From positions 62,001 to 126,000 of the forward strand of contig OZ251251.1 in the NCBI GenBank assembly GCA_965240325.2: a stretch of 64,000 nucleotides of DNA. The letters run 5' to 3'. Under the pieces are notes generated by a model, which was not told the DNA's origin, searched no databases, and was given only the letters and a program-made list of their open reading frames with translations. Source of the stretch: Rebecca billardiae RCC1528. Lineage: Eukaryota; Protista; Haptophyta. Shown piece by piece: positions 10,391 to 39,637 of this stretch. Position 1 is the first letter of the stretch. Each line of letters opens with the position of its first letter. The position numbers and the translations under genes were made by a program.

Positions 10391-10696
10391 CGCTCCCGCC
10401 CCCCCTGCTCCCGCCACGCCGGGCGAGTGTTGGCGTGGCTGGACTCAACCGCAAACGGTCCGGCGCCAGTGGAGCACTCTCACGCTGTCTCCGTGACTCC
10501 GACTCCGTCTCCTGCTCACGCGATCAGACTAGCTGACTCACTCACTCACTGAGACTGCGTCAATCGGGGCACTCGTCGCGCCGAGACTCGGCACGCTACG
10601 AGCTAGAGCAGCGCGGGCGATGACTCATAGCAGTCGTACACGCGGCCACCCTAACAGGACTGCGCGTGAACACCGCACCCGCCACGGGCCGGCCGC

Positions 10697-12121
10697 TCAG
10701 CGCAGCCCACAGCGCAGGGGCGGCAGCTGCGCCACGCGCTGAAGCGTTGGCTGCACTCCGAAATCGTCGCCCACGCCCAGGCCAAGCGCGCCCGAATGTG
10801 CGCCGCACGCGTGGACGCTACCGGCCACTGTGACGTAGAAGGCGTGCACTGGGCCAAACAAGCAGTCGACCACGCGCGCATGCGCGAGGCCCTCCACCCG
10901 CTCAGGCAGCGTGCGATCTATTCGGTCCCCCAGCCCCAGCTCGCCAAAGTTGTTGCTCCCAAACGCGTGCACGCTGCCGTCCGCACACACCACAGCGCTG
11001 GTGCAAAAGCCCGCACTGGCGCGCACGGCACGCATGCCACCCAGTGCTTCGATGCGCGTAGGCACCCCGCGATTGGCCATGTCACCGTGGCCGAGCGCGC
11101 CGCCGGAACCAACCCCGAAGGAGTGCACGCCGCCCGCTGCGTCCACCACCAGGCTGTGCAAAAAGCCCGCGCTCACGTGCACGGCGCGCATACCAGCTAG
11201 CGCCTCGATGCGAGTCGGCGTGCGCTGCCGCTGCGCGTTACCGTGGCCAAGACGACCGTGCAAGCCTTCGCCGCACGAGTACACGGCGCCGCACGCCGAG
11301 AGCAGCAGCGTGTGGAGGCTGCCCGCGGCCACGCCGCCCACGCGCACGCCGTCCAGCGCCTCGATGCGCGTCGGCTCCAGCCGGTGCGCCGTGTCGCCGT
11401 GGCCGAGCTGGCCTTCGCTGTTGCCGCCCCAACTGTACGCAGCGCCAGCGGTCGTGAGCGCGAGGCTGTGGTAAGCCCCAGCGCGTATGCTGACGACGAG
11501 GTCCACGCCCAGCGCCGCCACCTGCACGAACGCCCGTCGCTCAGCCTTGTCGCCCACGCCCAGCTGGCCGTAGCCGTTGCGGCCACACGCGTACACGGCG
11601 CCCGCCTCGCTCAGCGCGAGCAGGTGGTACCCACCCGCCGCAACGGCCCGCACGCGCACCGCCGCCAGCGAGCCCACGTACGTCGGCACGAGCACGGCCG
11701 TCTCCACGCGGAGCTCGGGATGGCCCAGCGGTGCGCCGCACGTGTGCACGCCGCCCTCCGCGTCAACAAATGCGGAAAGTCTCATCTCGGCGTTTGGGCT
11801 GGCGGACGCGACGTGCGCGTGCGCGTGCGCGAGCTCGAGCAGGCGCTCGCGCGCGAACAGCTCTTCCGCCCACGTGGACACGCCCGCGGGCAGAGCCGCC
11901 GGCAGCGCGGCCTCGTGCCCGCGCGCGCGCGCTCGCTCGCGCAGCGCGTGCTCGAGCGGCGCGCCGCGGAAGAGGCGCGCGGCGGCGTTGGCGGCGGCGA
12001 GGTCGCGCACGTCATCGATGTGGACGAAGATGCGCGCGACAAGCTCGGGCGGCACGTCGGTCAGCTGCACGGTCGCCGCTGCCGAGCGCGCCTTGGACCG
12101 CGAGCGCGTCGTCGGTGCCAT
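10697..12121 (-). CDS. F-box-like + 7x RCC1-repeat protein, copy 4 (474 aa)
   Basis: Same architecture; the ATG lies 95 bp from the left end of the MULE. Confidence 0.9.
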   Translation of the reverse strand: MAPTTRSRSKARSAAATVQLTDVPPELVARIFVHIDDVRDLAAANAAARLFRGAPLEHALRERARARGHEAALPAALPAGVSTWAEELFARERLLELAHAHAHVASASPNAEMRLSAFVDAEGGVHTCGAPLGHPELRVETAVLVPTYVGSLAAVRVRAVAAGGYHLLALSEAGAVYACGRNGYGQLGVGDKAERRAFVQVAALGVDLVVSIRAGAYHSLALTTAGAAYSWGGNSEGQLGHGDTAHRLEPTRIEALDGVRVGGVAAGSLHTLLLSACGAVYSCGEGLHGRLGHGNAQRQRTPTRIEALAGMRAVHVSAGFLHSLVVDAAGGVHSFGVGSGGALGHGDMANRGVPTRIEALGGMRAVRASAGFCTSAVVCADGSVHAFGSNNFGELGLGDRIDRTLPERVEGLAHARVVDCLFGPVHAFYVTVAGSVHACGAHSGALGLGVGDDFGVQPTLQRVAQLPPLRCGLR

Positions 12122-12216
12122 GCTGTTGCCCACGCCGGCCGACTCGCTCGACGACAACGACGGTTGGCGGCTGGTTGCCCGACGCAGGCAGGACGACAGT
12201 ACAGTCATACAGTTTA

Positions 12217-12692
12217 GGGAATCCTCCGGAAGTCCGACGAGGACCGACCGAGCAACCAGAACTCCGACAAACCTCCGCATCTCAGCACGGCGATTTCCGG
12301 ACTGGCACCCCCGCCAGTTTTCCGACGGCCAGAAGCTTCGGGAGCGAGCAAATGGCGCCGCTCGCCCGCAACGCGGAAGATACCGCTCGCGGCGAACCGG
12401 CGCGAACGCCCGCCTTGTATTCGGGCGGAGTACCCTAATGAGCGGGGGTGGGCACTTTCGTATTGCGCGCAGCCTGACGCCCACCCGCGACGAAACGACG
12501 CCGTCGACTCCTCCCGCCCGGACCGCCGCCGGAACGTTGCTCGTCAATTAGTTAGAGAAATGCGACGCCGGGGGGCGCGCCGCAAAACTTGCTCCCGAGC
12601 TCGCCACGAGGGAGGGCTGGGCGTGAGCACGACGTTAAGGGGGTACGCCTTCCACGCGCGCGGGCGTCGTGCGCGCGCGCGGCGCATCGCGC
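12217..12692 (+). repeat. Left terminal inverted repeat of the MULE (about 470 bp)
   Basis: Reverse complement of about 29468-29957; near-identical for about 395 bp, then patchy. Confidence 0.92.
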
Positions 12693-13023
12693 ACACGCAC
12701 CGACCGTTCTTGTTCCCTGCGGCCTCCCCTCGCAGGAGTTCCCCCTTCTCGCATCCGAGTCGGTCTGAGGCGTCGACGGTCGCCGGCCGCGACGAGCAGG
12801 CAAGTCGCACTCGTGATTCGTGAATGGTGCGAGGTCGCGGTGGGCCGGGGCGGGTGTGTGTGGTCGGCAGCGATGTTGGTGGCGTGCGCCGCCGCGCGCG
12901 CGCACACCGCACCACTCCCATGCGCCCCCGTCCCCTGTCTGACGATGTGCCCCGTGTGTGTGCTCGCGCGCGCCTGCGTTTGCCTCTCCGCCGCACGTGC
13001 TGGCACGTACCGCGCAGGCGGGC

Positions 13024-16000
13024 ATGCGGCATGTGTCCGCCGGCCCCAGCAGTCAGGACGACCTGCTGCTCGTGGACGCGGTGATCGCAGCGGCTGACGA
13101 CGCGTTGTGCACGCTGCAGTTCTCCTCGGCAGCAGCCCCGTGGACGTTCACCTTTGGTCTGGTGCTGTGCACCCTCGGCGTGGTCCACAGCACCGACGTG
13201 GGCCTTGGCGCCGCCGCCGCGCAGGTCACAGTGCCGCGCGTATGGGGTGGCAGCGGCGCCGACGCGCTGCTCACTGTGGTGGAGTGTGCGGAGTTGTTGG
13301 CTTCGCACCCGGACGCGCTGCGTGAGCGCGCGGACTCGGTGGCGCGCGTGTGCGCGGCGGCCCTTTGGTTCAGGGCCGTCGCGCAGATCGCCGTGCGCGC
13401 TGCCTGTGGTGCTTCCGCCGACGGGGCTCTGGCGGAGGAGGGCAGTTTCGCGGAGACGGCGCGACTGACGGCGTCCGCAGCGGCGCTCGGAGGGAAACCG
13501 GCGCCGCCGCCCGCAGGCACGTCCCACGCGCGCCGCTCGGGTGGCGCGGAGTCGCTGTCGCCGTCGTCCTCGGCGCCGACCCCAGGGCAGCACGCACGCG
13601 CCGCTGAGCACGCGCAGGGCGCATGCGCGTGGGCAGTGCGTGCGGCCTGGGCCGCCGCTCCGTTCCGGACGAAGCTGGCTCTGGCGGCGTTGTGCGCCCC
13701 CCGTCCGGATGCCCGCCCAGGTGCTGGGACTGGCGGAGGCGTCGACGACGTGCTCCCGGCGACGACGGCGGCGGCGGCGGCGCCGTCGGGCGCTTGGACG
13801 GGCGCGCCCCCCCCGTGCCCGCCGCTGTCATGCCCGTCCGAGGCGGTGATGTACTACGCGCGCGCCGTCTTCGGCGCGGACGCTGGCCAGTCCGAGCCTC
13901 TGTTCGTCGCCTTCGAGCGCGTGGCGTCGTGGCCAGCAGGCCGCAGCAGCCTCTGCGCGGACGCGCTGCGTGCGCGAGCGGCGGAGCTGCGCACGCAGGC
14001 GTACGCTGCCGTACGCGCGCTCTGCGCGCCCGTGCCGGCGCAGCCGCGCGCGTTCGTTCCCGCGTCGGCTGAGCAGGCACGCTGGCGCGACCAGCAGCTG
14101 CGTGCGGAACTCGAGAGCGCCCGCTTGGCGTGGCTCGGCGCCGTCTCGCAGGCCGTCGTGGGGGCCGGCGAAGGGGTGGCGGCAGATGGAGCGCCGCGCG
14201 CTGCCACGTCCGGCGCCGCCGCTGGACGTGACGCCGCCGTGCGCGCAGCCGCCGTCAGGCTGCGTGCTGCCGTGGTCGCCGACGGCCACGCCGGTCTTGC
14301 GGCCTTTGTGGCCGCGTGCGAGGACGGCTCGCTGCGCGAAGGGTGGCTGGCGCGGCCGTTGCTGCGGGCCGCCTCCACCATCGCCGAGCGCACCGTGTGG
14401 GCAGTGGTCATCCCGCTCGCGCCCGCGCTGGTGCACGTCGGCGAGGGCGCGCGTCTGCACCCCTTGCTCGACGCCACCTTCGCGCAGGCCCTCGTGGCCG
14501 GCGCGGCCGTCTCGCAGCCGCCAGTGACGCTGGTGCTGACGCTGTGCGGTGCGCACGCTGTCGTGGGCGCCGCTGCGCCGTGGCGCGACGAGGTGACGAG
14601 CGCGGCGTCGGGCGCGATGCGCCCTGCCTCCGCCGTGGTGGTGCCGCGCGCGCTGCCGCCTGCAGGCGAGCCGCCGCTGGGCGACGCGCTGGCGCCGACG
14701 CCTGCGGCGGCGCCCGCGCCCAGCCTCGACGACATGCTCGCGCATAACACCGCGGTTGGGCGCGCGCTGCAGGCCGCGTTTGGTGCCGCCGCTGCGGCAC
14801 CGCAGCGTTTGGACATGGACATGGGCGTGCTGGTTGGCCCGTTGCGCGAGTACGTGCTGCAGCACGCAGGCCTCGGCGGGGACGGCGATGCGTCCATGCC
14901 CTTGCTGGATGAGGGTGGCGGCCTCCTGCGCACGGTGCACGCGTACCAGTCCGCGGACGCGGGCGGCGAGGCGGCCGCGCAGCGGCGCTGGGGGGTGGGC
15001 GACCACGGCTCCTCTGCGCGCTCGGTGCTGGGGTGCCGCGCCTTTGAGCGCGTGGTGGCGGCGCTGAAGGGCGTCGTGAGCTCGTTGTTCCGCGGCGACG
15101 CCTCTGACGGTGTCCGCGGCCTCGACGCGCTCGACCTCACGGCCTGGCATGTCTTCGGGCGGCCGATGCGTCCGCCCGACGGGGGCCGCGGCACGTGCGA
15201 CGACGGCGACGTCACGACGTACGGGTGGCACGTCGACGGCACGACCGACGAGGACCATCTGTGGACGGCAGTGGTCCTCTTGCACTTGCCGCAAAGTGTG
15301 CCCACCAATCCCTTCCCGCTGCAGACGGTCGGCGCGCGCCCCCCCGGTGCGCGCGCCGACGCCGTGCCGCTGCACGGCGACGTTGCCCTGCAGGAAAGCG
15401 CAGGTGCAGTGCACATCTTCCCCGCCATGTGGCATCACCGCTCGGCCCCCAGTGCGCGCGCCGCGTCCTCGGGGTCCGTGCCGTCGTCCTCGCGCAAGAG
15501 GCCTACGCGTCAGGGTGCGGCGGACGCGCTCGTCCTGAAGGCTGTGTTCTCATTCGGGGGGCGGGGCCTCGCGGACACATTCCGCGCTTCGTTCACGCCG
15601 CCGCCGAGCGCGCCTCGCCCCGCCGCCACGCCGTGCGCGGCGCGCTCCGACCCGCCTCCCACGCCGTATCGGCTCGTGCCCGCCCTCGAGCGCGGGCTCC
15701 AGCACTCGTTTGAGACCAGGCTGCGCTGGGGGGCTGAGCCCACGCGCGCTGGCGCTGACGCCCGCTTCCGGCTCGGCTCGCCTGCGCACCACGAGTACGT
15801 CTCCCGCCTGGTGGTCGACCTGCCGACCGCGGCGCACGGCCAGCAGGCGCCGTCGGACCACGAGCAGCGGGCCTGGGCGCAGTCGGCGCTGCAGCTGGCG
15901 CTGCCCGTGTGCGCTGCCGACGGCGCGCAGCTCGCACATGAGCGCGCAGCGGCGCCTGCCGTGCCCCACGTCGTGGGGCTTGCGGGCGGCCACCCCGCGC

Positions 16001-19000
16001 CTCACGCCGACGGCGGTGGGCGCGCGCCCACCGCCGCGGCCGCGCACGGCACGGGCGCGCACGTGGGCGCCCCCTTTGACGAGGGCGCGCGGCCCCCACG
16101 CGCCGATGGCGTTGACGACCCGGCTGTCGGGCCGCGCGCGCCCACGGCCGTGCGTCGCCCCGACGCAGCGTCCGCCCCGCTGCGGCACACCGGCGCCCGC
16201 CAAAGCTCGAGCTCGGACGCGCCGGGCGCGCACGAGCCCGCGTCGCCGCGGCCTGGCGATGGGCACTCTTCGCCCGCTCGCGTGGCAACGCCAGCGCCGG
16301 GCGCACCCTGCGCTGCGGGCGACGCCGTGCCCTGCGTCGCGGTGACGGTGCCCGGCGCTGCTGTGTGCGCCGCGACGGCGCGCCCGCCACTCCACCCGGC
16401 GGGGCCGCCCCTCGACAGCAGCAGCGCGCGCGCGGTGATCGCGCAGCCGCCCGGCTGCGCCTCGCGCGCGCCGCCGCAGCCGCGCGGCGCCTCCGGTGGC
16501 GACGGCGGCAATGACGACGACGACGCGCGGCTGAGGGCCCTCCCTGCGCTGCCGCACGCAGGTGGCCTCTTGTCCGGCGGGGACCTCGCCCTGGCCCTGC
16601 ACGCCGGCCAGCGTGCCCACCTCGGTGGCCACCTTGCCGACGCGTTGGCGACGGAGAAGTCGGCGCCCGCATGGGCGCGCGGTGGAGTGCCCCTCGTCGA
16701 CGCGTCCGTGGGCCATAGGACGCACACGACGGCGGCCGCCCGCGGCAACGCGCCGCTGTTCGCCCTGAGCGCGGACTGGCCGACGATGCGCGTCGGCGAG
16801 TCCGACGCCCGCGGCGAGCCGCTCGTCACGGACGCCGATCCCGCCAGTGCCGCCATCGACGTGCGCGACTGGGAGGAGGGCATCGCGGACGACGACTGCG
16901 CGGACGCCCGCGCGCGCGCGGCGCAGGCGGCACTGCAGGCGGACGAGTCCGCCGACAGCGACGCCGCTCGCGCGCGCGACCCGCTGGCTGCCCTCATGCC
17001 GTGTCCACCCATCGTCGCTCGCGCGCAGCCGCCCTCCACCGGTCCCGCCGAGCCCCGCGCCGGCCAGGCCGGCGCCCGGCTTGTTGCGCCGGAGTCGCTG
17101 CACCACGGCGGTGACGCCGGGTACTTCCGCTACTCCGCGCCGTCGAGCACCTCGGCGAGCACGTCGGCGGCAGCGCACCGCCTCGAGCTCCGGCCCCTGG
17201 CACTGTGGAGGAAAATGGGCTTGCGGGCGCCGCGCCCGTACTCCCAGGTGAAGGCGGACGCCACCCTGCTCGAGCCCCCGATGGTGCGCCAGGTGTACCC
17301 GCGCCTCGCCGACGCGCTCACGCACGCCTCGGAGTGCGCGCTGCACCGGGGGGCCATGCCGCCGACGCGGCGCGTCGACCGCGCCAAGCTGACGATCGGA
17401 TGCCCCACGCCCGGGTGCCCGTCCGTGGTGGTGGTGGGCCCGTCGAAGTACGTGGACACGTTTGGCGCGCCGCCGTGGGCCGTGCAACGCTCGGTCGCGC
17501 ACGGCTCCATGTGCCGCAACCTGCGCATGGGCAAGGGGTCCGAGGAACACCCCATCGGCTCGCTGCCGCGCCCGACCAACCAGCCGGGCGTGCGCACGAC
17601 GCCGTACTCCCAACACGAGCTCGGGCGGGCGATCGTCGAGGACTGGAAGGCGCGCTTGGCCCGGCGCGGGACCACGCACGCGCAGCTGTGCTACGGCCCG
17701 CAGCAAGCACGAGAGGTCGCGCGCCAGCTGGACGCAGAGCTCCCCATGGGTGAATCGCTCATCGCGCGAGCGCACAAAGAAGCGCGCGCCGAGATCTACG
17801 GGGACGACACGGCCATGTCGCGCGACCTCGTGGCCGTGTGCGCGTCGCTGTCGCAGGAGGGCAACGAGGTCGCGCCCATCATCTTCCACGAGAACTCGGT
17901 CGAGGACGCGCTGCTGGCCATGTTCGGCCGCGTGCACGACGAGGTGCAGCAGGGGCTGCCGGCGGGCGCGCAGCGCGCGGCCTTCAACCCCGACGCGGCG
18001 GAGGTGCAGAAGGCGCTGGCTGACGTGCGCGGCAAGAAGGCAGTGGGTGGCTTCCACTACGTGCCCAAGCAGGCCAAGGCGCTTTACCGCGAGCACTTTC
18101 ACGCGAAGGGCAACACTGCCGCGTTCAGCGACGCGTGCTTCCTGCACCGCCCCGCCAGCGGTGGCGCGAAGCGCGCGGGTGCGCGCGCCCGCCGCACCCG
18201 GGCACGCCCTCGCGACGCCGCGTGCGTCCGTGCCGCCTCAGCGCCCGCCCGTCTGACCTGCCCGCGCGCACGCACGCGCGCGACGCAGGCATGCTCTTCG
18301 TCACGCTGGCCGTGAACGCCAACCGGCAGCTGTTCGTCTTGTGCGTGTCGTACATCGTCGACGTGGAGTGCCTGGACTCGTGGTGCGCGCACGTCGGATA
18401 CCTCATGCAGCACCTCGGCGGGGCGGCTGTGTGGGACGACCCCAACGGCGTCACCATCTCGGACGGCCAGAAGGGCCTGCGCGGCGCGTGGAAGCTGCTG
18501 TGCCCGCGCAGGCACCTCTTCCTGTGCACGTTCCACAAGCGCCAGACCTTCATCACTGGCTACGCACACTCGGCGAACGAGGTGCCCACCATCCTGCGCG
18601 TGTTCGACGCGTGCGTGGACGCGTTGACCGAGGAGGTGTGGGAGGCCGCCTGGGTGGAGATGCCAGAGTCGGCCAAGCGCATCCTCGACGTCATCCCCCG
18701 CGAGGAGCTCTTCCCGTGCTTCGCGCCGGTGTCCCTGCGCGGCTACGTGACGTCCGCGCCGGCGGAGTCCTTCATGCACTGGCTGCTGCCGGTGCGCAAG
18801 GCGCAGGGCCCGGTGTGGATGCTGCTCGACCTGCACGACAACCTCTTTCGCCTCTACGCGACGCACCGCAGCGTCGCCGTGCGCCACGCCCTGAAGCCCG
18901 ACGCCGATGATGAGGTGCACGGGTTGCCGCCACGGCACCTGGAATACGTGCGCCAGCAGGTGAGCACGGCGCGCACGCTCTCTCAGGTGGAAGTGCACCG

Positions 19001-22000
19001 TGTCCTCGACGGGCCGCACGCAGGTGCCCTGCGCATGCTCAACACCACGGACGGCTCGGCGCCGCGCCACGTGTACCTCGACGAGTTCCGGTGCTGCGCG
19101 TTGCTGCGCCGCAAGCGCCTGCCGTGCATGCACTTCTGCCGCGTGGCGACCTCCGTCGGCCGTGCCATGGGCACGTGCTTGCCCCAGGACCTGCGCTGCG
19201 AGACGTGGTTCGCGCAGGTGGGCCTTCGGGTCGAGCGCGACGCCAACGACACCCGGGTGGACACGCTCGGGCGCGTCGTGGCCATCACCAAGCCCGACGT
19301 CATCACACCGCCCCAGCGCCTGGAGGACGCCATTGCGGCTCTGCTGCTGCCCGCTCTCGCCAAGCGCGCCCTGCTCGAAAAGTACGTGGCCATGCCAGCG
19401 GTGCCCGCGCGCGTGGGCAGGCCCGCGTCCTCGGCGCGACGGCTGGCGTTCTGGGAGGGCCGCGCCGGGGCGCGCCACCCGCGCGCACCGCGCGCGCGCG
19501 CGCCGCGCGTGCAGTTGGGCAAATCCGCGGCGTCGTACGTGCGCCCCTTGAGGGAGCAAGCCCCGGACGGCGACTTCGCCCGGCGCGTGCGCGAAGCGCA
19601 CCGCGACGAGCTCGCGCGTGTGCTCGAGGGGCTGCCGGAGCACCTGTACGGCATCGCGCACACGCACGTGCTCGACGACACTAACGTGCTCGTGCGCGTG
19701 GCCGGCCCGCTCCGCGAGGGTGTGGTTGCGAACCAGCGACGTCGCCACTTTGCCACGTACACGGCCGGCACGACCGCCGCCGCGCAACTGCGCTGCTGCG
19801 CGTGTTTCGACCCCGAGGCCGCGGACCTCAGCGCGGCGTGGCCGGCGGACTCGCCGCCGATCGACCCCCGACTGGCGTGCCAGGGCTGCGCCTGCTTCAT
19901 CCACTCGCCCGCGCAGTGCAAGTATGTGTGGCACCTCGGCGCGCTGGACAGCGGGCTGTACATGTGCACGTGCTGCTACTTCCTGCTCGTCGCGGGGGCG
20001 TGGAAGCGCCTGCGCGAAGCGCGCGCAGCCGCGGCGGGCGAGGCGGCGGCGCCCGACGGGCCGCGCGGCGCGAGGCCGGAGGACGTGCCATACCACCGTA
20101 TGCGCGGACAGCACGGCGGTGGGGCCGCGCGCGGCGACCCCGCGCGCACCGCAGGCGCGCGCGGGGGCCGCGCAGGCGGCCGCGGGGGCCGCGGCGCGGC
20201 GGCGCCCGCGCCCGGGCGCGCGCAGCCGGCGGCCGCCCAGACGCGCGACGGCGCCGCCGCGGCGGGCGCGGGCGCGCGCGGCGGCCCGCGCCGGCACTGC
20301 GCGCGCGCGATCGCCTCGCAGGCACTTGGCGGCACCGGCGTACGCATGGGCTTCGCGACGGCACCGATGCCAAACGCCGCCACGCAGCGGCCGGCCGCAC
20401 CGCCTGAGGGCACGACGGGCCCGCGCAGTGGCGCGGACGCCGGCACGACGCCCGCCGCGCGCGCGCGCGCGCACGCCGCGGAGCCGCTGCCGGCCACGGG
20501 CGACACAGTACCGCTGGCGGCGACTGAGCATCCCTTCCGCCCCCCGTGGCCCGGCGCCCACGCGCCACCGCCACCGGGTGCGCGAGTCCCTCGGGCGCGC
20601 GCGGGCGCGGCAGAGCCACCGGCGGAGGCGGCGGAGTCCGAGTCGGCGTACGCGCGCCTCGCTGACGACAGCGCCGCAGTGCTCGCGGCGTTGCAGCGCA
20701 TACCTGGCATCGGTCGGGGCAGGGCAGCCATGTTCATGTGCAGTCGCGGCCTGTCAGCACCGTGGCCCACGCTCAGCGAGACGGCCGGTGACGCATTCGG
20801 CGCGTCCAGCGCGACGACGGGCAAGGTGCTGGCACAGTTTGCGCGCGCCGCCGCCGCCCCCGCCGAGCTGGCGCGCGCGCACGCGTCGCCCGCCGTGCCC
20901 GCCGAGGGCAGTGGCGGCGCGAGGGGCTCGGGCGGCGCCGCTCCGAACGCGGCCTCCCACGTGTGGGCGCACGCAGGCGCACACGACGTCGCGGCGGCGG
21001 CGGCGGGCCTGGCGGACGTCCTGGCTGGCGGCGGCGGCGCGGGCGCAGGCGCCGCAGGCCAGGCGGGCGCCGCGGCTGGCACCTCCCGCGCGGGCGCGGG
21101 GGCCGCGTCTGCGCCGTGCGCGCCCAAGCGCCCTCGGACTGCGGCCGCCGCCGACGACGCGGGCGGTGCGGCCGCGGATGGGCGCCTGCCGCCGGCTTCG
21201 CGCCAGGCGGCGGGCGCCCGCGCGTCCACGGCGGGGCCATCGTCGGCGGCGCGGTCGGTGCCGACGCCGGGCCCAACGCGCGCAGGCGCCGACCTGCTGG
21301 GGACGGCGCGTGGCACGTCTGGTGCCGCGGACGACACAGCCGTCGCCACCGCGGACGACGCGGTCGCCCACTTGGCGCGCACTGGTCTGCCGGTGCGCGA
21401 CGCTGGAGCGCGCGCCGCGGGCGATGACCGCCACGCGCCGGTGCGCCTGTTCCACGCCGCCGACGCCGCCGCCGGCGCAGACGACCACGACGCCGAATTC
21501 GCCCGATTACGGCTCTGCTGCGCCCAGGCAGTGCTCGACGACCTCTGGGGCGCGGGCGCCGCACAGCCGTTGCCCGTGCCAGCCGACGGTGACGACGTGC
21601 TGCACGCGGTGCTCGCGCACGCGCACGCGCGGGCGCGTCCGCCCAGCACGCTTGAGGCCCTGTGGTGGGCGTGCTGCGCGCGGCGCCTGCGCGCGGCGGC
21701 CGCGTCGTGGCTGGCCGCGCACGCGCATGCCACGCCCACCGAGCACTCCGTCGGCTGGGGTGGCGCGCTGGGCCCGGCCGAGTCGGCAGAGGACCTGCGA
21801 GCGCAGGCGCGCTTCATCGGCTTGTGCGGCGCTGACGTGCGCGCACTTCCCCCGGAGAGCGCAGGTGGCGACGAAGCTGGGCAGGCGCGTTTGCGGGCTC
21901 TGCGCATGGTGGCCCCCGACGACTCGTCGTCGTGGCACACCCCCGGCCAGGGCGTGCGCGATCTGGACGACGCAGTGACGCTGGCAGTGCGAGCGGCGGA

Positions 22001-23930
22001 GTACACGTGCGACGGGTACGTCAGCAGCCCGGGCAACACGTGCGATGGCCCTGAGTGGTACGCGGCAGTCGCTCGCGCCGCCGGCGTGCACCTCCTCGTC
22101 TTCGACATGGCCTACGCACGCCGAGCTCGCGACGTGCACGGCGTCGCCATGCGTGAGCACGTGCGGTGGTATCCTCCGACGGCAGTGCGCGTGCCGCCGG
22201 CGCCGGCGGCGCCACGCGCTCGCGGGGGCGCCGGCGCGAAGCGCCGGCGCGCCGACACGCCCGACGCAGGCGCCGCGCACGCGGACGCACGTCCGCTGTG
22301 CGAAGCGCGCCTGAGCCTGGGACGCGAGACGCACGCACGCGTCCTGCGCACGCTCGACGTCGGGGCGATGGGCACCGGCTGGGTGGCCATCGTGCGCAAC
22401 GTGTGTCCTCGCCGGCAGTTCTACGCAGTGGTTGCGCCGCAGGCCACCCCGCGCGCGCACGGGGTGTTGCCGGCGTCGCGCTGGAGTGCGTTCCAGCCGG
22501 CTGCGGACGCGCACGTGAGGCTGGCGTCCAGGCGGCGCGGGTGCGAGGTGGATGCGCTGGACCCGAGCGCGTTCGGCACCGAGGTGGTCCCTCTCGACGG
22601 CTCCGACGGGGCATGGCGGTGCGACGTGGGCTTGGGGCTGCGCCTGGCCTTGGGCGAGACCGCCGCTGACGTGACGGCGGAGCGATGCCGCGCTGACGTG
22701 ACGGCGGGTGATGCCGCGCCACGCGGCGCAGCCGCGCCGCGCGCCGCGGCGGCGACGGACGCCACCGTGGACGCGGGTGCGGCGGCGCCGGCGCCCGCCG
22801 GGCACGGGGCTGCGCCGGCTGCGGTGGCTCCGGCGGCCGCCGCACACGTGCACGCGCCGGTGGACGACGCCGCGGTCCTGCTCGAGCGCCTGGGCTTCCC
22901 CGTGCTGCCCCTGCCGCCGGCGTTGCCGCCCGAGGCGCGGGCTGGTGCACAGACCGGAGCACCCGGCGGCGTGGATGGCGACGGCAACGTCGCCGCGGCC
23001 ATCCGCGAGCTCTTCGGCGGCGGCACGAGCGTGCAGGACGTTCCCGGCGATGGCGACTGCTACTTTCACGCGTGGCTCGCGCACGACACGCGTGGCGTGC
23101 GGGCCGACCTGCCCGCCGCCAACGCGCGCGCGCAGACGCTGCGCGACGGCGTGTGCTCGTACATCGCGTCGTGGGAGGACGAGCACGGACCGGGCGAGAC
23201 GCTCGGCACGGCGTCGGCCACGGCGTCGGCGGCAAGCGCGCTCGGCATGCTTGGCGTCAAGCCAGCATCCATCCCCCGGGCCCGCACCGGCCAAGGACTC
23301 GAAGTGCAGGACGAGGACTGGCAGGAGGTGCTGCCACTGCCACTGCGACATACTGGAGGCGTGCGGACGCTGGGAGCAGCGGCGCGCGCGTACGCGCGCG
23401 GCGCCCGGTACACGGGCGACGGCGCTGGCGCGCATGCGGCGCGCGCTGGTGCGTGGTCGGCGTGGGGCTCGCACGTCGCGACGGCGCGCGCCACGGGCCT
23501 GCCGCTGGTGGTCCTTGAGCTGCGCGGCGGGGCTACGCCGGAGGAGGCGGCGTGGCGCGCGTTCACCGACAACGTCTGGTTCTACCCCGTGCAGACGCGG
23601 CCGGGCCTTCGCTGGCGGCGGACTGACGACGGCGGGCGCAAGGGCAGCGTCGCAGTGAGCACGCATGCGCACCTGCGCCTGCGTGACGAGCGCACGCGGC
23701 GCGCCTTGCAGCGTCTGGACGTCACGCAGTTGGGCACGACGTGGATGGCCGTGGTGTACGACGGCCGTTGCCACTTCGGCGCGGTGGTGTCGGCGACGGC
23801 GCCCCTGGAGGCGCGTTCGGCGCGCGACAACAACGAGGGGCGTCTGGCGCACTTCATGCGAGCTACATCACCCTTGCAGGGGTACGTTGAGTGCGCACCA
23901 CGCCGCCTGAGCACGCCAGGTGCCAGCTAA
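13024..23930 (+). CDS. MULE transposase polyprotein (about 3600 aa if spliced): 2OG-Fe(II) oxygenase-like, MuDR/WRKY-type Zn finger, DDE core, SWIM, PHD, HhH, inactive OTU-like and intact OTU domains
   Basis: ORFs 12958..18315 and 18135..23930 join in frame through a phase-1 intron (donor 18161 or 18179, ctgac branch site about 18253, acceptor cgcag ending 18288). This restores SDACFL..G-MLFVTLAVNANRQLF...ECLDSW...TISDGQKGL...HLFLCTFH...TSAPAESF (MULE D-D-E) and CCALLRRKRLPCMH (SWIM). The true start may lie in the TIR (12560); further introns are possible. Confidence 0.8.
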
Positions 23931-26900
23931 CAGAACGACAGGCGCCGACTCACGGCACCGGCCGGCCGGCCTGCGTCCGAGCTGACGACGACATAGCACG
24001 GGCCGGCACAGTGTGGGCCCCCGGCGGCGTGTATCAGTGTTGTCGCGCGTGGCGCTGCTTGCATCCCGCTAAGACCTGCGCTAAGACCTTCTCGGCGGGC
24101 CCCGCCGTAGGCCCTTGTGGCGCCGTCACTGCGAGTGGCGCAGAGGCGCTGGCCGGGGGGGTGCCTGTGGCAGTGTGCTCGGAGAACCGGGCTCAGGCCA
24201 CGGCGATTCCGACGAGCCACTCCGCCGGCACCCCGGGTGCCGAGCTCGTGGCCAGATGCTGCCAGCGGTGGCGGCCACCCGCGTGGCCGCCCCGGGTGGC
24301 GCGCAGCCTGTGCACGCCACCGCGACGCGCGCGCGCGCACGGGGGCGGTCGGGCGCGACTGAGCCAGGGCTGCGCGTACACGCCGCTCGGCGTGCGCACG
24401 GCTGGCGCCGCCCGATGTGGTGTGTGCGCGCACCTGTGGGCGGCGCGTGGGCACGTCAGGACGCGCCCTTGTGGGTCGGCGTCTACTGCGCGGCCGGCGG
24501 GGGCTGGCCCGCGGGGGCTTCGTCGGCCTGCGCGGCCGGCGCACGGAGCGACAGTGCAGCGGCCTGGCGGGCACACGCGAGTCAGGGGGCGGCACTCGGC
24601 GCCGCGCGCGCTGGCCGAATGCGACCGGCGGCGGCGCGCCACGCCGTGCCGTGGGTGCGCGCGACGTGGGCGCAGCGGACGCAGCGCTCACCGACGGGCC
24701 CGCAGCCGGGGCGTGCGCGCCGTGCGGTGCTTCGCCTGTTGGCAGCTGGACGCACGCCGCGTGCGCCGACGCGTGCGGGCCGGGCTGTGCGCCACCTGCG
24801 CTGCGGTCCATCATGAACTGCGTCAACGCCTGCATAGACGCCACCATCGCGCTCGCGATCTCGTCACGTTTCATTGCGGCCGCGCGATCCTCGTCGCGTC
24901 GGCGCGCCGCCTCCGCGCGCTCCTGCTGGCGCCAGGCCTCGTCCGCCGCGCGCTCCTGCCGGCGCCGCTCGTCGTCCGCCGCGCGCCAGGCCTCGTAGTC
25001 CTTCTGGCGCTTGGCGTCGTTCGCAGCGAGTTGTCCGATCGCTTGTGCCATTGCGTTGGGGATGCCGTGCACCATCTCAGCGAGCTGGGCGTGGGCCGCA
25101 GCGAGCTCGGTGCACATGCGCGTCGCCTGTTCGGGTGGCCCGGGTGCGCGCGCGACGGCGGATGGCCGTGTGACGGCGACGCGGCCCGGGTCGCCGACCG
25201 GCCGGCGCGCCACCACACGCCCACCGGCGGCGCCGCCCGCGCCGCCCGCGTCGGCGCCGCGTTCGTTCAGGCGACGCTTGCGCGCTGGCGCCGCCTGTAC
25301 GTGCCGCGCCAGCGAGGGCGCGCGCCTGTGGAGCGCGGCGGCGTACATCTTCGGCGCGTCCACGCCGCTGCTTTTGCCGGTGACTGGGTCCGCCGGGTGC
25401 GTCCAGAGCCGATCCTGGCAGAACGGGACGATGTCAGCCCACACGCTGATGCACAAGGGGCGAAAGTCCACAATCGCACCCAGGGGCGGCGCGGCAGGTG
25501 GCGTCCCGGCAGGCGGCGGGCGCGCCAGGGCGGCTGCCTTCACGGGGTCGCGCATGTGCGGGACGAAGAACAGCGTGCCGAAGTTGCCGGCGTCGGCGTC
25601 GTCGCCGGCCGCCGCGCGGCTGTGCGTTGACAGCGCCTCCGTCGACTTCCACGAGCGCGTCTTCGAAGGCACGTAGGTGAACTCGAGCACCTCGTCCCGG
25701 TGGAGTGCCCGCGAGCTCGTGTCGGCGTTGAGCACGCGGTCGTAAGCACCGGCGTTATCCTCGGAGACGGCGAGGAGCTCGAAGGTGAGCCGCTTCTTCC
25801 GCTCGGGCGCGACGAGCCGTGCGCTGACGATGCGCACCTTGGTGAGGTAGTCCGCCGCCTCGAAGGACGCACCATCGCCCACGCTGACGTCGGCGAGGGC
25901 GTCGTATCGCAGGTGTGCCGCCTTGACGCGCAGCACGAGCGCCGAGGCGCACGCGATGGCCGCCGCGACGCACGTGTGCTTCGAGGCGAGCATCAGCTCT
26001 TGTTCATGGACGGGCAGCTCGCCGACGACGCCTGCGACGCGCACGCGCGTCCCACCGCCCGGCCGGGGGAGAGGCCTGTCAAACGAGCGCTGCGGGCGGC
26101 CGGCGACCATGATCTGGTGGAGCGTGTGCAGCAGGTCCGCCGACGCCGCCGTGCCCCCAATCACGTCGTAGTTCGACTGCACGTACGTGAGCGCCGCCTC
26201 CGCGATGGCCGCGGCGTTCGTCATGAGCCCGGGCGGGTCGCCATCGGGCGCCCAATGGCATGGCCCGATGCCGAGCGCGCTGCACACCGCGGAGGCGCCC
26301 ATGAGCACGTCCGTGGACGTCGGGACCACGTCCCGGCGCGGGCGGGGCGGCAACGCGTCCGTCTCGTCCGGGCTGGGCGGCGAGTCGTGGAGCGCGGGGG
26401 CGGCGTGCTGGACGGGGGGCGCAATGGCCCGCGGCGGCGCTGACTGCAGCTCGCACGCAGCAACCTCACGCCGGCTGACGGCGGCGGCGAAGGCGTCGAC
26501 CGTGAGGTCCGTGCACGTCGCAGCCGTCATCGCGCCCGCCGCACCACTGGGCGGCCGCGTGGCGAAGGTGAGGAGGCGCCAGCCCTTCTCGAAGCGGATG
26601 GCGTACGCGTGCGCGCCGACGACGGGCTCCGACTCGTCGGTGTCGTCGGTGTCCACGGACCGGTAGTCCACCACGGCCACGGCGGCGTGCAGCAAAGGCG
26701 ACGTCCCCTGCTCAGCGGGCGCCCGCAGCGGCGTGGGCACAAGCGCGCACCAGGAGGGCGCCTGTGCAACCACGGCGGGGAGGCCGAACACCGCCTGTCC
26801 CGAGCGCCGCATCGAGGGCAACGCAAGCGCCCGGTGAACCCAGGGCGCGTCGCCGCCTGCGACGCCATCGTCGTCGGCCTCAGCGTCCGCTAAGGCGACT

Positions 26901-29614
26901 CGCACGTCCGCGTCGAGGACGTAGGGCAACGGGCCGTGCACACCGAAGTGCTCGCCTGCTGCGCGCAGGGCGAGCTCAGAGACAGAGCCGCCGACGCTCG
27001 CGGCGGCGCCGGCGTAGAACTCGCGCACCGCATCGTCCACCTCGCTGCGCGTGTACAAGGCGCCCGAGGCGCACAGCTCGCGCACAGCGTCGGCATCCGT
27101 GAGCACGCCGAAGTGCTTGTTGTTCGTGGCATCGCACACCACGTTCACCACGCGGACCGTGCCGCCGCCGCCGCCGAGATGCCGTGACGCGAACGCGCGG
27201 TTGAACCTGAGGATGGCCGGCACCAATCGGCCGTTGTTCGGTTGCGGCCCGTGCTTCGTCGTCCGCGCGTCCGCATCCGCCACCGCGCTGGGGCGCACCA
27301 GCACGTGCGCGTGCGCCTGCGCCGGCGCGGCGGGCGTGTCTCCGCCGAACCTCCGGCGTTTCCCGTAGATGCCGCTGAAGAAATGATCCACGTGCTGCAA
27401 GACATCGCTCATCGCGAACAGCTCGCGTGAGCCGCCGTCGCCGCTGCCGTAGACGCCGCCGCCGTCGTCAGCGTGGCCGCCACCGCCGGGTTGCGCGGCG
27501 GCGGGCGCCTGCTGTGGTGCATGGGAGTGCGACCCCGCTGCGCCAGCCGCCGCTCCACCCATCGACGCCGTCGCCGCCCGTGCCACCTCGCCCGAGGCAG
27601 CACCACCGGAGTCATCTGAGTTGACGCCCGCGGGGCCGTCGGCGGCCGCAGCCGGCGCCGGCGGCGCCGGCGCCGCCGCGGTGACGCCGGTGGCAGCCGC
27701 CCGCGCCTCGGCGGGTGCGCGTGGCGGCTCGGCGCGTTCGGCGCGCGTCGCGGTCGACGCCGTCGCCGCCCGTGCCACCTCGCCCGAGGCAGCACCACCG
27801 GCGTCATCTGAGTTGACGCCCGCGGGGCCGTCGGCGGCCGCAGCCGGCGCCGGCGGCGCCGGCGCCGCCGCGGTGACGCCGGTGGCAGCCGCCGGCGCCT
27901 CGGCGGGTGCGCGTGGCGGCTCGGCGCGTTCGGCGCGCGTCGCGGGGCCGCCGGCGGCCGCAGGCGGCGGCGCCGGCGCCGCCGCGGTGACGCCGGTGGC
28001 ACCCGCCAGCGTTTCGACGGGTGCGCGTGGCGGCTCGGCGCGTTCGTCGCTTGTCGCGGGGCCGCCGGCGGCCGAAGGCGGCGCCGCCGGCGCCGCCGTG
28101 ACGCCGGCGACCGCCGTCGGCGCCGGCGGCGGCGCCGGCGCCGGCGCCAGCGTTGCGACGGGTGCGCGTGGCGGCTCGGCGCGTTCGTCGCTTGTCGCGG
28201 GGCCGCCGGCGGCCGCAGGCGGCGCCGCCGGCGCCGCCGTGACGCCTGCGACCGCCGTCGGCGCCGACGGCGGCGCCGGCGCCGAGGTGACGCCGGGCAG
28301 CGCTTCGGCGGGTGGCGCAAGTGGCGGCTGGCGGCGCATGGCCCGCGTCCGCACGCCGCCGCGCCCGTTGTGGTGAGCCGCCCCCTGCGCGCCGCGCTGC
28401 CCCGCAGCCTCCTGCTGGATGCCCTGGGCGGCGTAGCTGCCGCCGCCCACGCGCGTGCTGCCGTGGCGGGCCGGCCGGCCGTCGGCGCCCTGCTCGGCGC
28501 CCTGCTCGGCGCCCGGCTGGGCGCCCTGCTCGGCGCCCTGCTCGGCGCCCGGCTCGGTGCCCTGCTCGGCGGCCTGCTTGCCATGCCCGGCGCCCGGCTG
28601 GGCGCCCTGCTCGGCGCCCTGCTCGGCGCCCTGCTCGGCGCCCTGCTTGCCCTGCTCGGCGCCCGGCCCGGCGCCCGGCCCGGCGCCCTGCCCGGCGCCC
28701 GGCTGGGCGCCCTGCTCGGCGCCCTGCTCGGCGCCCGGCTCGGCGCCCTGCTCGGCGGCCTGCTTGCCCTGCTCGGCGCCCGGCTCGGCGCCCGGCCCGG
28801 CGCCCGGCTGGGCGCCCTGCTTGCCCTGCTCGGCGCCCTGCTCGGCGCCCGGCTCGGCGCCCTGCTCGGCGGCCTGCTTGCCCTGCCCGGCGCCCTGCCC
28901 GGCGCCCGGCTGGGCGCCCTGCTCGGCGCCCTGCTCGGCGCCCGGCTCGGCGCCCTGCTCGGCGGCCTGCTTGCCCTGCTCGGCGCCCGGCTCGGCGCCG
29001 AGCAGGGCGCCGAGCAGGGCGCCCTGCTCGGCGCCCTGCTCGGCGCCCTGCCCCTGCTCGGCGCACTGCTCGCCGGCGGGCGGCGCACGCACGTGCGCCG
29101 CTGGCACCCTCTTCAACGAGCCTGCGCCCTCGACTGTTCCATCCGCGGACGCACCGACGGTGTCGCCAGGGACCGCAGCCCACGCATGAGCAGACACTCC
29201 CTCGGCAGCCCGGAGGACGTACGTCTGCACTCGCCCGTGTGCGCCGACCCCAAGCGCCGCGACCACAGCACGGACTGCCGGTGCACCCTGCTCGTACACC
29301 ACGTCCACAGCAGCCCCGTTCGCGAAGCTCGTCGCAGTCGGAGTCGTCCCCGCAGGCGGTGGCGGCCTGCGCGCGGCACGCGGGCACGACGCCGCGCAAC
29401 GACGCAGAACGCACGGCGTGACGACATGCGCGAGCGCACGCCGCGCGCGCGAACGAAGACACACGCGCGCGCGATGCGCCGCGCGCGACCACGCGGCGCG
29501 CGCACGACGCCCGCGCGCGTGGCAGGCGTACCCCCTTAACGTCGTGCGAGGCATCGATCGTCCCTCGTGGCGAGCTCGGGAGCAAGTTTTGCGGCGCGCC
29601 CCCCGGCGTCGCAT
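23927..29614 (-). CDS. MULE second (accessory) gene of unknown function, with a possible N-terminal Tudor/Agenet-like domain, AEQG repeats and a C-terminal coiled coil
   Basis: 1895-codon ORF starting at an ATG in the right TIR. Probable in-frame intron 29367-29531. Globular-looking middle region; coiled coil [26 protein letters not shown]. The 3' end (below about 24700) is uncertain. Confidence 0.65.
27560..28300. repeat. Coding tandem duplications (about 120-190 bp units, ERAEPPRAP...[10 protein letters not shown])
   Basis: Four ERAEPPRAP-containing units; two near-identical units contain [21 protein letters not shown]. Confidence 0.85.
28482..29065. repeat. 12-bp coding minisatellite (gccctgctcggc; [12 protein letters not shown] on the minus strand)
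   Basis: Dozens of in-frame units, visible directly in sequence and translation. Confidence 0.95.
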
Positions 29615-29957
29615 TTCTCTAACTAATTGACGAGCAACGTTCCGGCGGCGGTCCGGGCGGGAGGAGTCGACGGCGTCGTTTCGTCGCGGGTGGGCGTCAG
29701 GCTGCGCGCAATACGAAAGTACCCACCCCCGCTCATTAGGGTACTCCGCCCGAATACAAGGCGGGCGTTCGCGCCGGTTCGCCGCGAGCGGTATCTTCCG
29801 CGTTGCGGGCGAGCGGCGCCATTTGCTCGCTCCCGAAGCTTCTGGCCGTCGGAAAACTGGCGGGGGTGCCAGTCCGGAAATCGCCGTGCTGAGATGCGGA
29901 GGTTTGTCGGAGTTCTGGTTGCTCGGTCGGTCCTCGTCGGACTTCCGGGGTTTTCCC
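29468..29957 (-). repeat. Right terminal inverted repeat of the MULE
   Basis: Inverted copy of 12217-12692. Confidence 0.92.
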
Positions 29958-30440
29958 TACAGTTTACTAAGAATAAGAGACGCACACAGCTCAGGCAGGC
30001 GAGATTGACGCCCGCCAACTGTACGGCTCTGCTGAACGTGTAGAGTCGTATCTTACTACTTGTACAGTGCACAGCAGGTCGTGCGACGGCACGGCGGCGG
30101 TGTGCGCGCGGAACCCACGCGCACAGCTGATGCTCAATGGCAATGCGCGCGTCATCCGACCTTCTGGCCCTCTCCATTATCATGAGTGCCCGCCTATACC
30201 ACGCCACTCTGTAAATCGCAGCGCAAGCTCGAGCGGCTGCTCCAGCCCCGCCGTGCTGCCACAAGCTGGCTGCATGCGCGGCCCGGGTGGCACGGGCTGA
30301 TGGCAGCTGCCTGCTCAGTGGCTGGTGCATGGGTGCGACGCCTCACTGACCATGTCCGAAGAGAGCAGCGGCGAGCACTCGCACACGCAGCACTCGCAAG
30401 ACTGCAGCGTGAGCACCGCACCCGCCACGGGGCCGGCCTC

Positions 30441-31865
30441 TCAGCGCAGCCCACCGCGCAGGGGCGGCAGCTGCGCCACGCGCTGCGGCGTCGGCTGCTC
30501 TCCGCCATCGATGCCCACGCCCAGGCCGAGCGCGCCCGAATGTCGGCCGCACGCGTGCACGCCGCCGTCCGCTGTGACACAGAGGGCGTAGGCTTGACCC
30601 AGTGAGCAGTCGAGCACGCGGGCATGCGCGAGGCCCTCCACCCGCGTGGGCAGCGCGCGATCCATGCTGTCCCCCAGCCCCAGCTGGCCACAGTGATTGT
30701 CCCCAAACGTGTGCACGCTGCCGTCCGCACACACCACTGCGCTGCTGTGACAGCCCGCGCTGGCGCGCACGGCACGCATGCCGCCCAATGCCTCGATGCG
30801 AGTGGGCACGACGCGTTGGGCCACGTCACCGTGGCCGAGCGCGCCACAATCGGCGTCTCCGAAGGAGTGCACGCCGCCCGCCACGTCCACCACCAGGCTG
30901 TGCGACCAGCCCGCGCTCACGTGCACGGCGCGCACGCCCAATAGCGCCTCAATGCGCCTCGGCGTGTGCCGATCCTGCTCGTCACCGTGGCCGAGCTGGC
31001 CGGAGCGGAGGTCCCCACAAGAGTAGACTGCGCCACAAGCCGAGAGCAGCAGCGTGTGCCCACAGCCCGCGGCCACGCCGCCCACGCGCACGCCGTCCAG
31101 CGCCTCGATGCGCGTTGGCTCCAGCCGGTGCTCCGTATCGCCGTGGCCGAGCTGGCCGTAGCCGTTGTCACCCCAGCTGTACGCAGCGCCGGCAGCCGTC
31201 AGCGCGAGGCTGTGATGGTAACCAGCAGCAATGCTGAGGACGAGCTCCGCGCCGAGCGCCGCCACCTGCACGAACGCCCGTCGCTCAGCCTTGTCGCCCA
31301 CGCCCAGCTGGCCGTAGGCATTGCCTCCGCACGCGTACACGGCGCCCGCCTCGCTCAGCGCGAGCAGGTGGCGCCTACCCGCCGCAACCGCGCGCACGCG
31401 CAACGCCTCCAGCGAGCCCACGCGCGTCGGAACGAGCACGGGCGCCTGCTTGCTGAGCTCGGGATGGCCCAGCGGTGCGCCGCATGTGTGCACGCCGCCG
31501 GCACCGTCAACAAAGGCGGAACATTTCCTCCCGAAAGCTGGGCTGGCGGACGCGACGTGCGCGTGCGCGTGCGCGCGTTCCAGTATGCGCTCACGCGCGA
31601 ACAGCTCCTCCACCCACGTGGACACGCCCGCGGGAAGGGCCGCCGGCAGCGCGGCCTCGTGCCCGCGCGCGCGCGCGCGCTCGCGCAGCGCGTGCTCGAG
31701 CGGCGCGCCGCGGAAGAGGCGAGCGGCGGCGTTGGCGGCGGCGAGGTCAAGCACGTCATCGAGCTGGGCGAGAATGCGCGTTATCAGCTCGGGCGGCACG
31801 CCGGTCAGCCGCACGGTCGTCGCTTCCGAGCGCGCATGGGTAGGCGCGCGCGTCGTCGGTGCCAT
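30441..31865 (-). CDS. F-box-like + 7x RCC1-repeat protein, copy 5 (474 aa)
   Basis: Same architecture; ends LPPLRGGLR. Confidence 0.9.
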   Translation of the reverse strand: MAPTTRAPTHARSEATTVRLTGVPPELITRILAQLDDVLDLAAANAAARLFRGAPLEHALRERARARGHEAALPAALPAGVSTWVEELFARERILERAHAHAHVASASPAFGRKCSAFVDGAGGVHTCGAPLGHPELSKQAPVLVPTRVGSLEALRVRAVAAGRRHLLALSEAGAVYACGGNAYGQLGVGDKAERRAFVQVAALGAELVLSIAAGYHHSLALTAAGAAYSWGDNGYGQLGHGDTEHRLEPTRIEALDGVRVGGVAAGCGHTLLLSACGAVYSCGDLRSGQLGHGDEQDRHTPRRIEALLGVRAVHVSAGWSHSLVVDVAGGVHSFGDADCGALGHGDVAQRVVPTRIEALGGMRAVRASAGCHSSAVVCADGSVHTFGDNHCGQLGLGDSMDRALPTRVEGLAHARVLDCSLGQAYALCVTADGGVHACGRHSGALGLGVGIDGGEQPTPQRVAQLPPLRGGLR

Positions 31866-32362
31866 AATCCATATGCTTGTTGCCCACGCCCGTCGAGTCG
31901 CTCGACGAGTCGACGACGACGACGGTTGGCGGCCGGCTACCCGTACGACTGCTCTGTACGTGTAGAGTCGTTACTCCGTCGTATATATATCTTACTACTT
32001 GTACAATGCATAGCATCAGGTGCGACAGCACGGCGGCGGTGTGCGCGCAGAACCCACGCGCGCAGCTGATGCTCAATGGCGATGCGCGCATCATCTCCAT
32101 CTCACTCCCGATGATGAGTGCCCGCCTACCACGCCACGCGCAGCGCGAGCTCGAGCGGCTGCTCCAGCCCCGCTCTGCTGCCACAAGCTGGCTGCATGCG
32201 CGGCCCGGGTGGCACGGGCTGATGGCAGCTGCCTGCTCAGTGGCTGGTGCATGGGTGCGACGCCTCACTGACCATGTCCGAAGAGAGCAGCGGCGAGCAC
32301 TCGCACACGCAGCACTCGCAAGACTGCAGCGTGAGCACCGCACCCGCCACGGGGCCGGTCGC

Positions 32363-39594: not shown

Positions 39595-39637
<43 letters not shown>

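Follow-up and report, generated by a model that had tools for sequence, protein, structure and literature searches.

Transposases of the Mutator superfamily usually comprise fewer than about 1,000 residues, and the elements encoding them mostly measure 2.5-5 kb, reaching up to about 10 kb. The subject of this analysis is a complete element of 17.7 kb (positions 12217-29957) located in a 64,000-nucleotide stretch of the haptophyte Rebecca billardiae RCC1528 (GenBank assembly GCA_965240325.2, contig OZ251251.1, positions 62,001 to 126,000; C35:62001-126000 in the contig numbering applied below), which is referred to as the window throughout. With a probability of about 0.8, this element is a Mutator-superfamily DNA transposon of the cut-and-paste type that is autonomous and was active very recently. 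Mutator-like elements (MULEs) are characterized by a 9-bp target-site duplication (TSD) and terminal inverted repeats (TIRs) of hundreds of base pairs (PMC6446971). Rehavkus elements of arthropods and annelids display 9-bp TSDs as well, together with TIRs of up to 400 bp, a PHD finger, a minisatellite in front of the 3' TIR and one open reading frame (ORF), and their placement inside or beside Mutator is debated (PMC6446971). Furthermore, cysteine proteases fused to the transposases of DNA transposons have been described, namely Ulp1 in MULEs (KI-MULEs and others), OTU or Ulp1 in Ginger1 and OTU or VTD in Helentrons (PMC2836005, PMC9741609), and for VTD modules of Helitrons deubiquitinase activity was demonstrated (PMC9741609). 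In fungi, DNA transposons other than Mutator carry genes of TET/JBP dioxygenases, which are thought to counter silencing (PMC12730594).

The ends of the element, compiled in Table 1 together with all other features, confirm the perfect 9-bp TSD and the near-identical TIRs claimed in the initial annotation, with TACAGTTTA on both sides and repeats of about 462 bp. The left terminus reads GGGAATCC... and the right one ...GGTTTTCCC. Mismatches between the left and the right TIR are confined to bases 6-9, one 12-nucleotide block and two single sites. As these differences are identical in every copy of the element, they characterize the family and give no information on age. MULEs are generally recognized by TSDs of 8-11 bp, typically 9 bp, and by long TIRs of tens to hundreds of base pairs; here, a perfect 9-bp TSD was found in seven of nine copies, and the TIRs span about 462 bp. 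The guanine-cytosine (GC) content of the window amounts to 70-80%.

A genome-wide search for TIR copies, proposed as a check in the initial annotation, was carried out in the 72-Mb assembly (41 contigs, 72% GC) and gave 20 matches. At least nine copies proved to be full-length and, after fetching and alignment, 99.4-99.8% identical, each residing at a different site. Further copies on C22 and C17 are truncated, and a query with the second gene of the element, gene B, returned an additional 99% identical match on C7. Substitutions in the nine copies range from 4 to 51 per 17.7 kb (mean 0.14%). Apart from a short common repeat, the flanks are unrelated between copies, and the perfect 9-bp TSDs of the seven copies are TACAGTTTA (three times) as well as TAGATTCAA, TAACGATAA, TTTGTTTTA and GTACAAAAT (once each), all of them AT-rich against the 72% GC background of the genome. 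Since flanks and TSDs differ between the copies, these originate from separate transposition events, and segmental duplication as their source is ruled out. Insertions and deletions within the ORF bodies are multiples of three, the sole exception being a 2-bp deletion at 23951 in the copies on C1 and C8, which lies past the transposase stop in the last eight codons of ORF3 (gene B). In each of the nine copies, the transposase frame remains open (3,592 codons; 3,587 in the C8 copy), while gene B carries a premature stop in one copy only, that on C39. Hence, the initial description of a young element with uninterrupted ORFs is borne out, and the element is young, intact, multi-copy and probably still moving. 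Synonymous and nonsynonymous changes among the young copies were too few to reveal selection. In the nine-copy alignment, transversions (51) outnumber transitions (38), and variable sites are about three times fewer in exon 1 of the transposase gene than in exon 2 or gene B.

Several observations concern the target sites themselves. The TSD TACAGTTTA is common to the window element and the copies C22:479615-497380 and C5:2621158-2638923, and in these three insertions it coincides exactly with the initial 9 bases of a short repeat that is abundant in the genome (window 29958-30022). For the 65-mer of this repeat, a first look at the genome yielded more than 1,100 candidates, and 40 of the 40 matches scored were 100% identical from base 1. 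The short repeat is found on both sides of the C22 copy in inverted arrangement, so the target site was a palindrome in this case. Occurrence of TACAGTTTA at the edge of the short repeat reflects either an insertion hot spot or an unrecognized link between two repeats. Next to the copy C1:2949542-2967329, a second TACAGTTTA is located nine bases left of the element and is preceded by ...GTCACTTCCC, which resembles the end of another TIR element, of the GGGAA type, that used the same target sequence. The two copies lacking a matching TSD, C10:1131353-1149118 and C12:33954-51719, are among the youngest. When the left 9-mer of one copy is compared with the right 9-mer of its partner, only a single base differs, but as the reciprocal pair is mismatched, the missing TSDs are not accounted for by a simple exchange between two elements.

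The coding capacity of the element comprises three open frames, 12958-18315 (+), 18135-23930 (+) and 23927-29614 (-), with lengths far above chance (at 75% GC, stops are estimated at about 1.4% of codons, i.e., approximately one per 73 codons). In both plus-strand ORFs, the GC content at first, second and third codon positions is 0.78, 0.62 and 0.88, respectively; codon periodicity tracks the named frames and is locally strong across the non-repetitive parts. The two plus-strand ORFs overlap out of frame at 18135-18315 and are most likely the predicted exons of a single gene that comprises about 3,592 codons after splicing. For the intron model, all frame-restoring introns were listed, and the one from GT at 18161 to AG at 18288 was chosen, which gives the usual spacing after the first catalytic Asp; GC-AG junctions near 18161-18288 are a possible alternative. 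A sister family in the same genome (C13:2395716-2406867, C24:1206560-1217702 and C27:990735-1001857) is interrupted at exactly the same point, by 185, 179 and 177 nucleotides in its three copies, and the residues flanking this interruption are conserved, with 53-54% identity over the last 318 residues of exon 1 and 66% where exon 2 begins. In two copies the interruption causes a frameshift and hence two ORFs, and in the third it happens to be in frame and leaves a single open frame of 3,254 codons. Such a length-variable stretch without codon constraint between conserved coding flanks points to an intron. Thus, the single spliced ORF put forward in the initial annotation gains backing from the shared point of interruption in the sister family, but splicing itself is predicted from sequence. 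In all similarity searches the exons were used separately, and their join served only to count codons and stops. About 21% of the transposase product is Ala, and long linkers rich in Ala, Gly, Pro and Arg separate the conserved islands.

The catalytic core provides the link to the Mutator superfamily. In a scan of the start of exon 2, the Pfam family MULE (PF10551) was matched at profile positions 16-95 of 99, with an E-value of 0.0054 and a score of 17.6 bits; the first Asp was absent from the piece scanned, as it is located in the other exon. MULE was the only transposase family scoring in the Pfam scan. The spliced model displays the triad spacing D-67-D-100-E, with the Glu in an AES context (18762-18770, read by eye). 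In Mutator transposases, a CxxH motif follows the second Asp and the Glu stands in an E-S context. The 9-bp TSD, the ends of hundreds of base pairs, the D-67-D-100-E triad with CxxH, the two convergent genes and the weak MULE match jointly assign the element to the Mutator type. It very likely belongs to this superfamily as a deeply diverged lineage, which, judged from word-index protein searches, metagenome and viral scans and an exhaustive search with the oxygenase-like piece, looks new to public data. Each motif listed in the initial annotation was found at the position where it had been placed.

Table 1. Coordinates of the element and its features in the window (.: no strand given; sister identity: protein identity to the sister family)
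Feature	Position	Strand	Basis or remark
Left TSD copy, 9 bp, TACAGTTTA	12208-12216	.	identical to 29958-29966
Left TIR, about 462 bp, terminus GGGAATCC	12217-12678	+	97-98% identical to right TIR
Transposase exon 1, from the first in-frame ATG up to the predicted donor site, 1,712 codons + 1 base	13024-18160	+	ORF, periodicity, open in 9/9 copies; 50-54% sister identity
Oxygenase-like island: HxD (H-V-D) 15229-15237, His 15433-15438, Lys 15538-15540	15004-15600	+	motifs; 50% sister identity
CX4C...HX3C zinc-finger-like motif upstream of core	17401-17514	+	region 54% identical to sister family; no Pfam hit
Proposed first catalytic Asp, in FSDACF (18124-18141), end of exon 1	18130-18132	+	67 residues before second Asp in spliced model
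Predicted intron, 128 nucleotides, GT-AG	18161-18288	+	frame-restoring; identical in 9/9 copies
Transposase exon 2 including stop codon	18289-23930	+	ORF, periodicity, open in 9/9 copies
DDE core, second part: D 18462-18464, CxxH (CTFH) 18525-18536, E 18765-18767	18291-18790	+	MULE match, motifs, 66% sister identity
SWIM-like CC...CxH pattern	19092-19133	+	motif only
C4HC3 Cys-rich finger, PHD/RING-like pattern	19794-19976	+	57% identical to sister family
Helix-hairpin-helix-like motif	20691-20726	+	Pfam HHH PF00633
OTU-like module 1, degenerate: Asp for Cys (21585-21608), Gln for His (22410-22433)	21540-22490	+	BLASTP vs module 2
OTU-like module 2: Cys 23058-23060, His 23772-23774	22992-23830	+	motifs, Atlas neighbours
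Gene B / ORF3, convergent with transposase gene	23927-29614	-	ORF; start and end uncertain
Minisatellite arrays before right TIR, in frame in ORF3	27562-29051	-	114-192-nucleotide units 27562-28284; 12-nucleotide unit x49 28482-29051
Right TIR	29496-29957	-	alignment with left TIR
Right TSD copy, TACAGTTTA	29958-29966	.	also first 9 bases of abundant short repeat

Beyond the core, the transposase frame contains further conserved islands, among them a tandem OTU-like pair at the C-terminal end. Module 2 carries the Cys loop PGDGDC at 23043-23060 and a C-H-F motif at 23769-23777. Module 1 is related to it by BLASTP (E-value 3e-6, 29% identity over 129 residues) and has neither of the catalytic residues. 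Using the Atlas protein-language-model search, 21 of 30 neighbours of module 2 were OTU families (0.92, 176-178 shared features), including haptophyte and giant-virus clusters, and the only match among PDB sequences was that of the Cys loop to a nairovirus OTU domain over 16 residues (E-value 0.1). In the sister family, the OTU module is 33% identical. From these motifs and neighbours, the C-terminal module is probably OTU-like.

In the oxygenase-like island of exon 1, the HxD motif and the later His are plausibly spaced, and Atlas proposed DUF4246/OGFOD2-like neighbours at 0.87 with low recognition, which is below the tool's own evidence line of 0.9. A genome-wide scan with the DUF4246 model retrieved one host gene only and did not match the element. 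The island may tentatively be read as a diverged Fe(II)/2-oxoglutarate oxygenase, at somewhat less than even odds. The Cys-rich finger downstream of the core follows the pattern C-x2-C-x24-C-x2-C-x4-H-x4-C-x15-C-x2-C. A helix-hairpin-helix motif had also been assigned in the initial annotation; the motif is present, but its PF00633 match (E-value 0.037, 14.3 bits) remains below the cut-off of 24. Searches in NCBIfam and PHROGs returned nothing relevant.

Gene B, which converges with the transposase gene, is a genuine second gene that evolves rapidly. Its GC content at the three codon positions is 0.80, 0.65 and 0.86, and a core of about 840 codons (approximately 24934-27454) shows clear codon periodicity and includes a coiled-coil-like stretch. 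The tail at 23930-24800 is devoid of periodicity, which makes the true end of the gene uncertain. Its repetitive N-terminal third consists of the minisatellites, and these arrays vary in length from copy to copy in steps of 12 nucleotides or multiples thereof. Gene B and its convergent counterpart in the sister family are 37-38% identical, and searches with gene B gave no family match and no PDB sequence match. An antisense artefact was considered for ORF3 and ruled out by its own periodicity, by insertions and deletions that are almost all multiples of three and by the counterpart of about 38% identity in the sister family. The sister family as a whole exhibits the same layout of oxygenase-like island, core, Cys-rich finger, OTU-like tail and convergent second gene at 33-66% protein identity, with about 660 residues fewer between finger and OTU tail.

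On this basis, a mode of transposition can be proposed. The zinc-finger-like region and the DDE core would bind the long ends, and the transposase would excise the element and reinsert it with a 9-bp stagger into AT-rich 9-mers. While transposition proceeds or once it is complete, OTU-like module 2 would most likely remove ubiquitin or a related modifier; another option is that it cuts the giant precursor itself. Gene B would act as a helper. A more far-reaching version, regarded as improbable, is that of a Mutator lineage with counter-defence enzymes built into the transposase polypeptide, in which an active OTU-type hydrolase, a degenerate partner serving as ubiquitin-binding decoy and a protein-hydroxylase-like oxygenase would act at the transposition site, either by removing marks of the ubiquitin type or by modifying chromatin or repair factors of the host, or in which the giant product would be cut by the protease in the manner of a viral polyprotein. 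If true, either the counter-defence or the polyprotein mode would be transposon biology undescribed for Mutator elements. The anti-silencing toolkit is a conjecture; the precedents of Ulp1 in MULEs, OTU in Ginger1 and Helentrons, deubiquitinases of Helitrons and TET/JBP make it plausible and at the same time only partly new.

Several results weigh against an autonomous Mutator transposon with enzymatic accessory modules and are considered here along with the explanations that they would favour. The MULE score of 17.6 bits is below the gathering threshold of 27.6, and whole ORFs gave no Pfam match, with only piecewise scans providing the weak MULE and HHH hits. Word-index protein searches at E-values up to 1, using residues 1-480 of exon 2 against long proteins as well as core plus finger, retrieved no relatives, nor did metagenome and viral scans including one with the core, and a PDB sequence search with the DDE piece gave no match; distant relatives of the core may have escaped these searches. 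The sub-threshold score and the lack of public protein relatives in the word-index searches would suit a separate, undescribed DDE lineage near Mutator/Rehavkus that shares merely the long ends and the 9-bp TSD, as would the Rehavkus-like combination of a C4HC3 finger downstream of the core with a minisatellite ahead of the 3' TIR. This is nonetheless held to be quite unlikely, given that MULE is the only scoring transposase family, that its match covers most of the model and that the CxxH and E-S motifs fit Mutator as generally defined. The new MULE lineage claimed in the initial annotation is thus supported by the lack of relatives in these searches and a fitting structure, but not by the score, which falls short of the cut-off. 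With respect to autonomy, the intron is predicted from sequence, the same interruption occurs in all copies, and two of the nine copies have no matching TSD. All this could be reconciled with a non-autonomous family in which 18161-18288 is a frame-breaking insertion, the transposase is split and copies are mobilized by another enzyme or spread by segmental duplication. Such a scenario is very unlikely, however, as the interruption in the sister family varies in length at the same residue between conserved flanks, where an insertion would not be expected to persist in this manner. Moreover, removal of the stretch at its canonical GT..AG ends brings the exons back into frame, with the spacing that usually follows the first Asp. 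Neither ORF is disrupted in any of the nine copies, and flanks differ between copies, seven of which have TSDs of their own.

Regarding the accessory modules, the oxygenase-like piece found no match in Pfam, NCBIfam or PDB sequences (in Pfam on short tiles and in PDB at E-values up to 10) and none in an exhaustive HMMER search against 1.84 billion representative proteins, and AlphaFold2 without alignment gave no usable fold at a predicted local distance difference test (pLDDT) score of 32. For the OTU-like region, the Pfam family OTU (PF02338) did not match the pieces at E-values up to 10, a genome-wide scan with PF02338 identified 14 host OTU genes and no copy of the element, a word-index protein search with the OTU piece was without match, and AlphaFold2 without alignment again delivered a pLDDT of 32 and no usable fold for module 2. 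On short tiles at E-values up to 10, neither PHD and RING profiles of Pfam matched the C4HC3 finger nor did SWIM (PF04434) match its candidate, which has CC...CxH instead of CxC. Hence, the oxygenase-like and SWIM domains named in the initial annotation found no confirmation, every profile search for either being negative. Its PHD-like finger survives as a C4HC3 pattern but without a PHD profile match, and its OTU domain retains the Cys loop, the His motif, the Atlas neighbours and the kinship of the two modules, but no Pfam match and no fold. The accessory domains, whose standing had been tied to profile and structure searches, failed in the former as a group, and the structure attempts were uninformative. 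These outcomes, together with the lack of PHROG support, the low recognition by Atlas at 0.87 for the oxygenase-like piece and a product with 21% Ala and long low-complexity stretches, speak for extra modules that are not enzymes at all; the transposase would then be inflated by linkers and by lineage-specific non-catalytic domains for DNA binding, multimerization or host factors, and the motifs would be chance or relics. This alternative deserves attention and is yet rather unlikely, since the islands are kept at 33-57% identity in the sister family despite linkers of other lengths, the Atlas neighbours are consistently OTU and the Cys loop is a near-exact OTU Cys loop. If the OTU-like module is indeed a protease, it might still act as a processing enzyme, with the 3,592-residue product being a polyprotein cut by module 2, and not as a host deubiquitinase. 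Some RNA viruses have OTU-like proteases with dual roles that include polyprotein processing; the unusually long single frame, the islands parted by disordered-looking linkers and the spliced model of the sister family, likewise one long gene with the protease at its end, agree with this option. It is considered unlikely, as no cleavage sites are known and as described transposon proteases are discussed as ubiquitin or SUMO hydrolases (PMC2836005, PMC9741609).

The autonomous Mutator transposon favoured here is surrounded by a tandem array of at least seven minus-strand RCC1-repeat genes (window 5105-12214 and 30441-35758), which match Pfam RCC1/WD40_RLD with E-values down to 1e-74 and some of which have an F-box-like motif, recognizable as such in one of them. 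Seen from the start codon (12121-12119) of a neighbouring RCC1/F-box-like gene (10697-12121), the left end of the element is located 96 bp upstream and thus in the 5' flank of this gene. Elsewhere in the window, an ORF of 1,576 codons (37259-41989, +) without Pfam match lies within a stretch of 81-84% GC (38000-44000), the most GC-rich part of the window.

The transposase gene has about four times the usual Mutator length. The element also illustrates that, in protist genomes of very high GC content, standard profile libraries can overlook almost an entire element. Should the C-terminal module prove to be an active hydrolase of the ubiquitin type, the recurring link between transposition and ubiquitin or SUMO, already known from Ulp1 in MULEs and from OTU/VTD in Ginger1 and Helentrons, would come to include OTU in Mutator. 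The occurrence of nine almost identical copies alongside a sister family within one genome makes the system tractable.

Compared to known systems, the element resembles MuDR from maize in its long TIRs, its 9-bp TSD and its two convergent genes, a DDE transposase and a helper of unclear function, and also in its insertion near the 5' end of a host gene. In contrast, MuDR measures about 5 kb and its transposase about 800 residues, whereas the haptophyte element has 17.7 kb and approximately 3,592 residues, its core being flanked by additional islands on either side; unlike in MuDR, gene B displays no detectable similarity to known proteins and the MULE score is sub-threshold. By description, it recalls Rehavkus in its 9-bp TSD, its TIRs of hundreds of base pairs, a C4HC3 pattern following the core and repeat arrays ahead of the 3' TIR. 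Rehavkus, however, has one ORF and animal hosts, while two genes are present here, the arrays run in frame in gene B and the finger is unmatched by the PHD profile. As in protease-fused transposases, a papain-like Cys protease module, here predicted from motifs, is found at the C-terminal end. The Mutator elements covered in PMC2836005 and PMC9741609 carry Ulp1 and not OTU, whereas a tandem pair with one degenerate member occurs here, and the module has diverged too far to be recognized by the Pfam OTU model. Finally, a putative Fe/2-oxoglutarate oxygenase on a DNA transposon recalls the fungal TET/JBP transposons; in contrast to these, its weak neighbours are DUF4246/OGFOD2-like and the island is part of the transposase reading frame.

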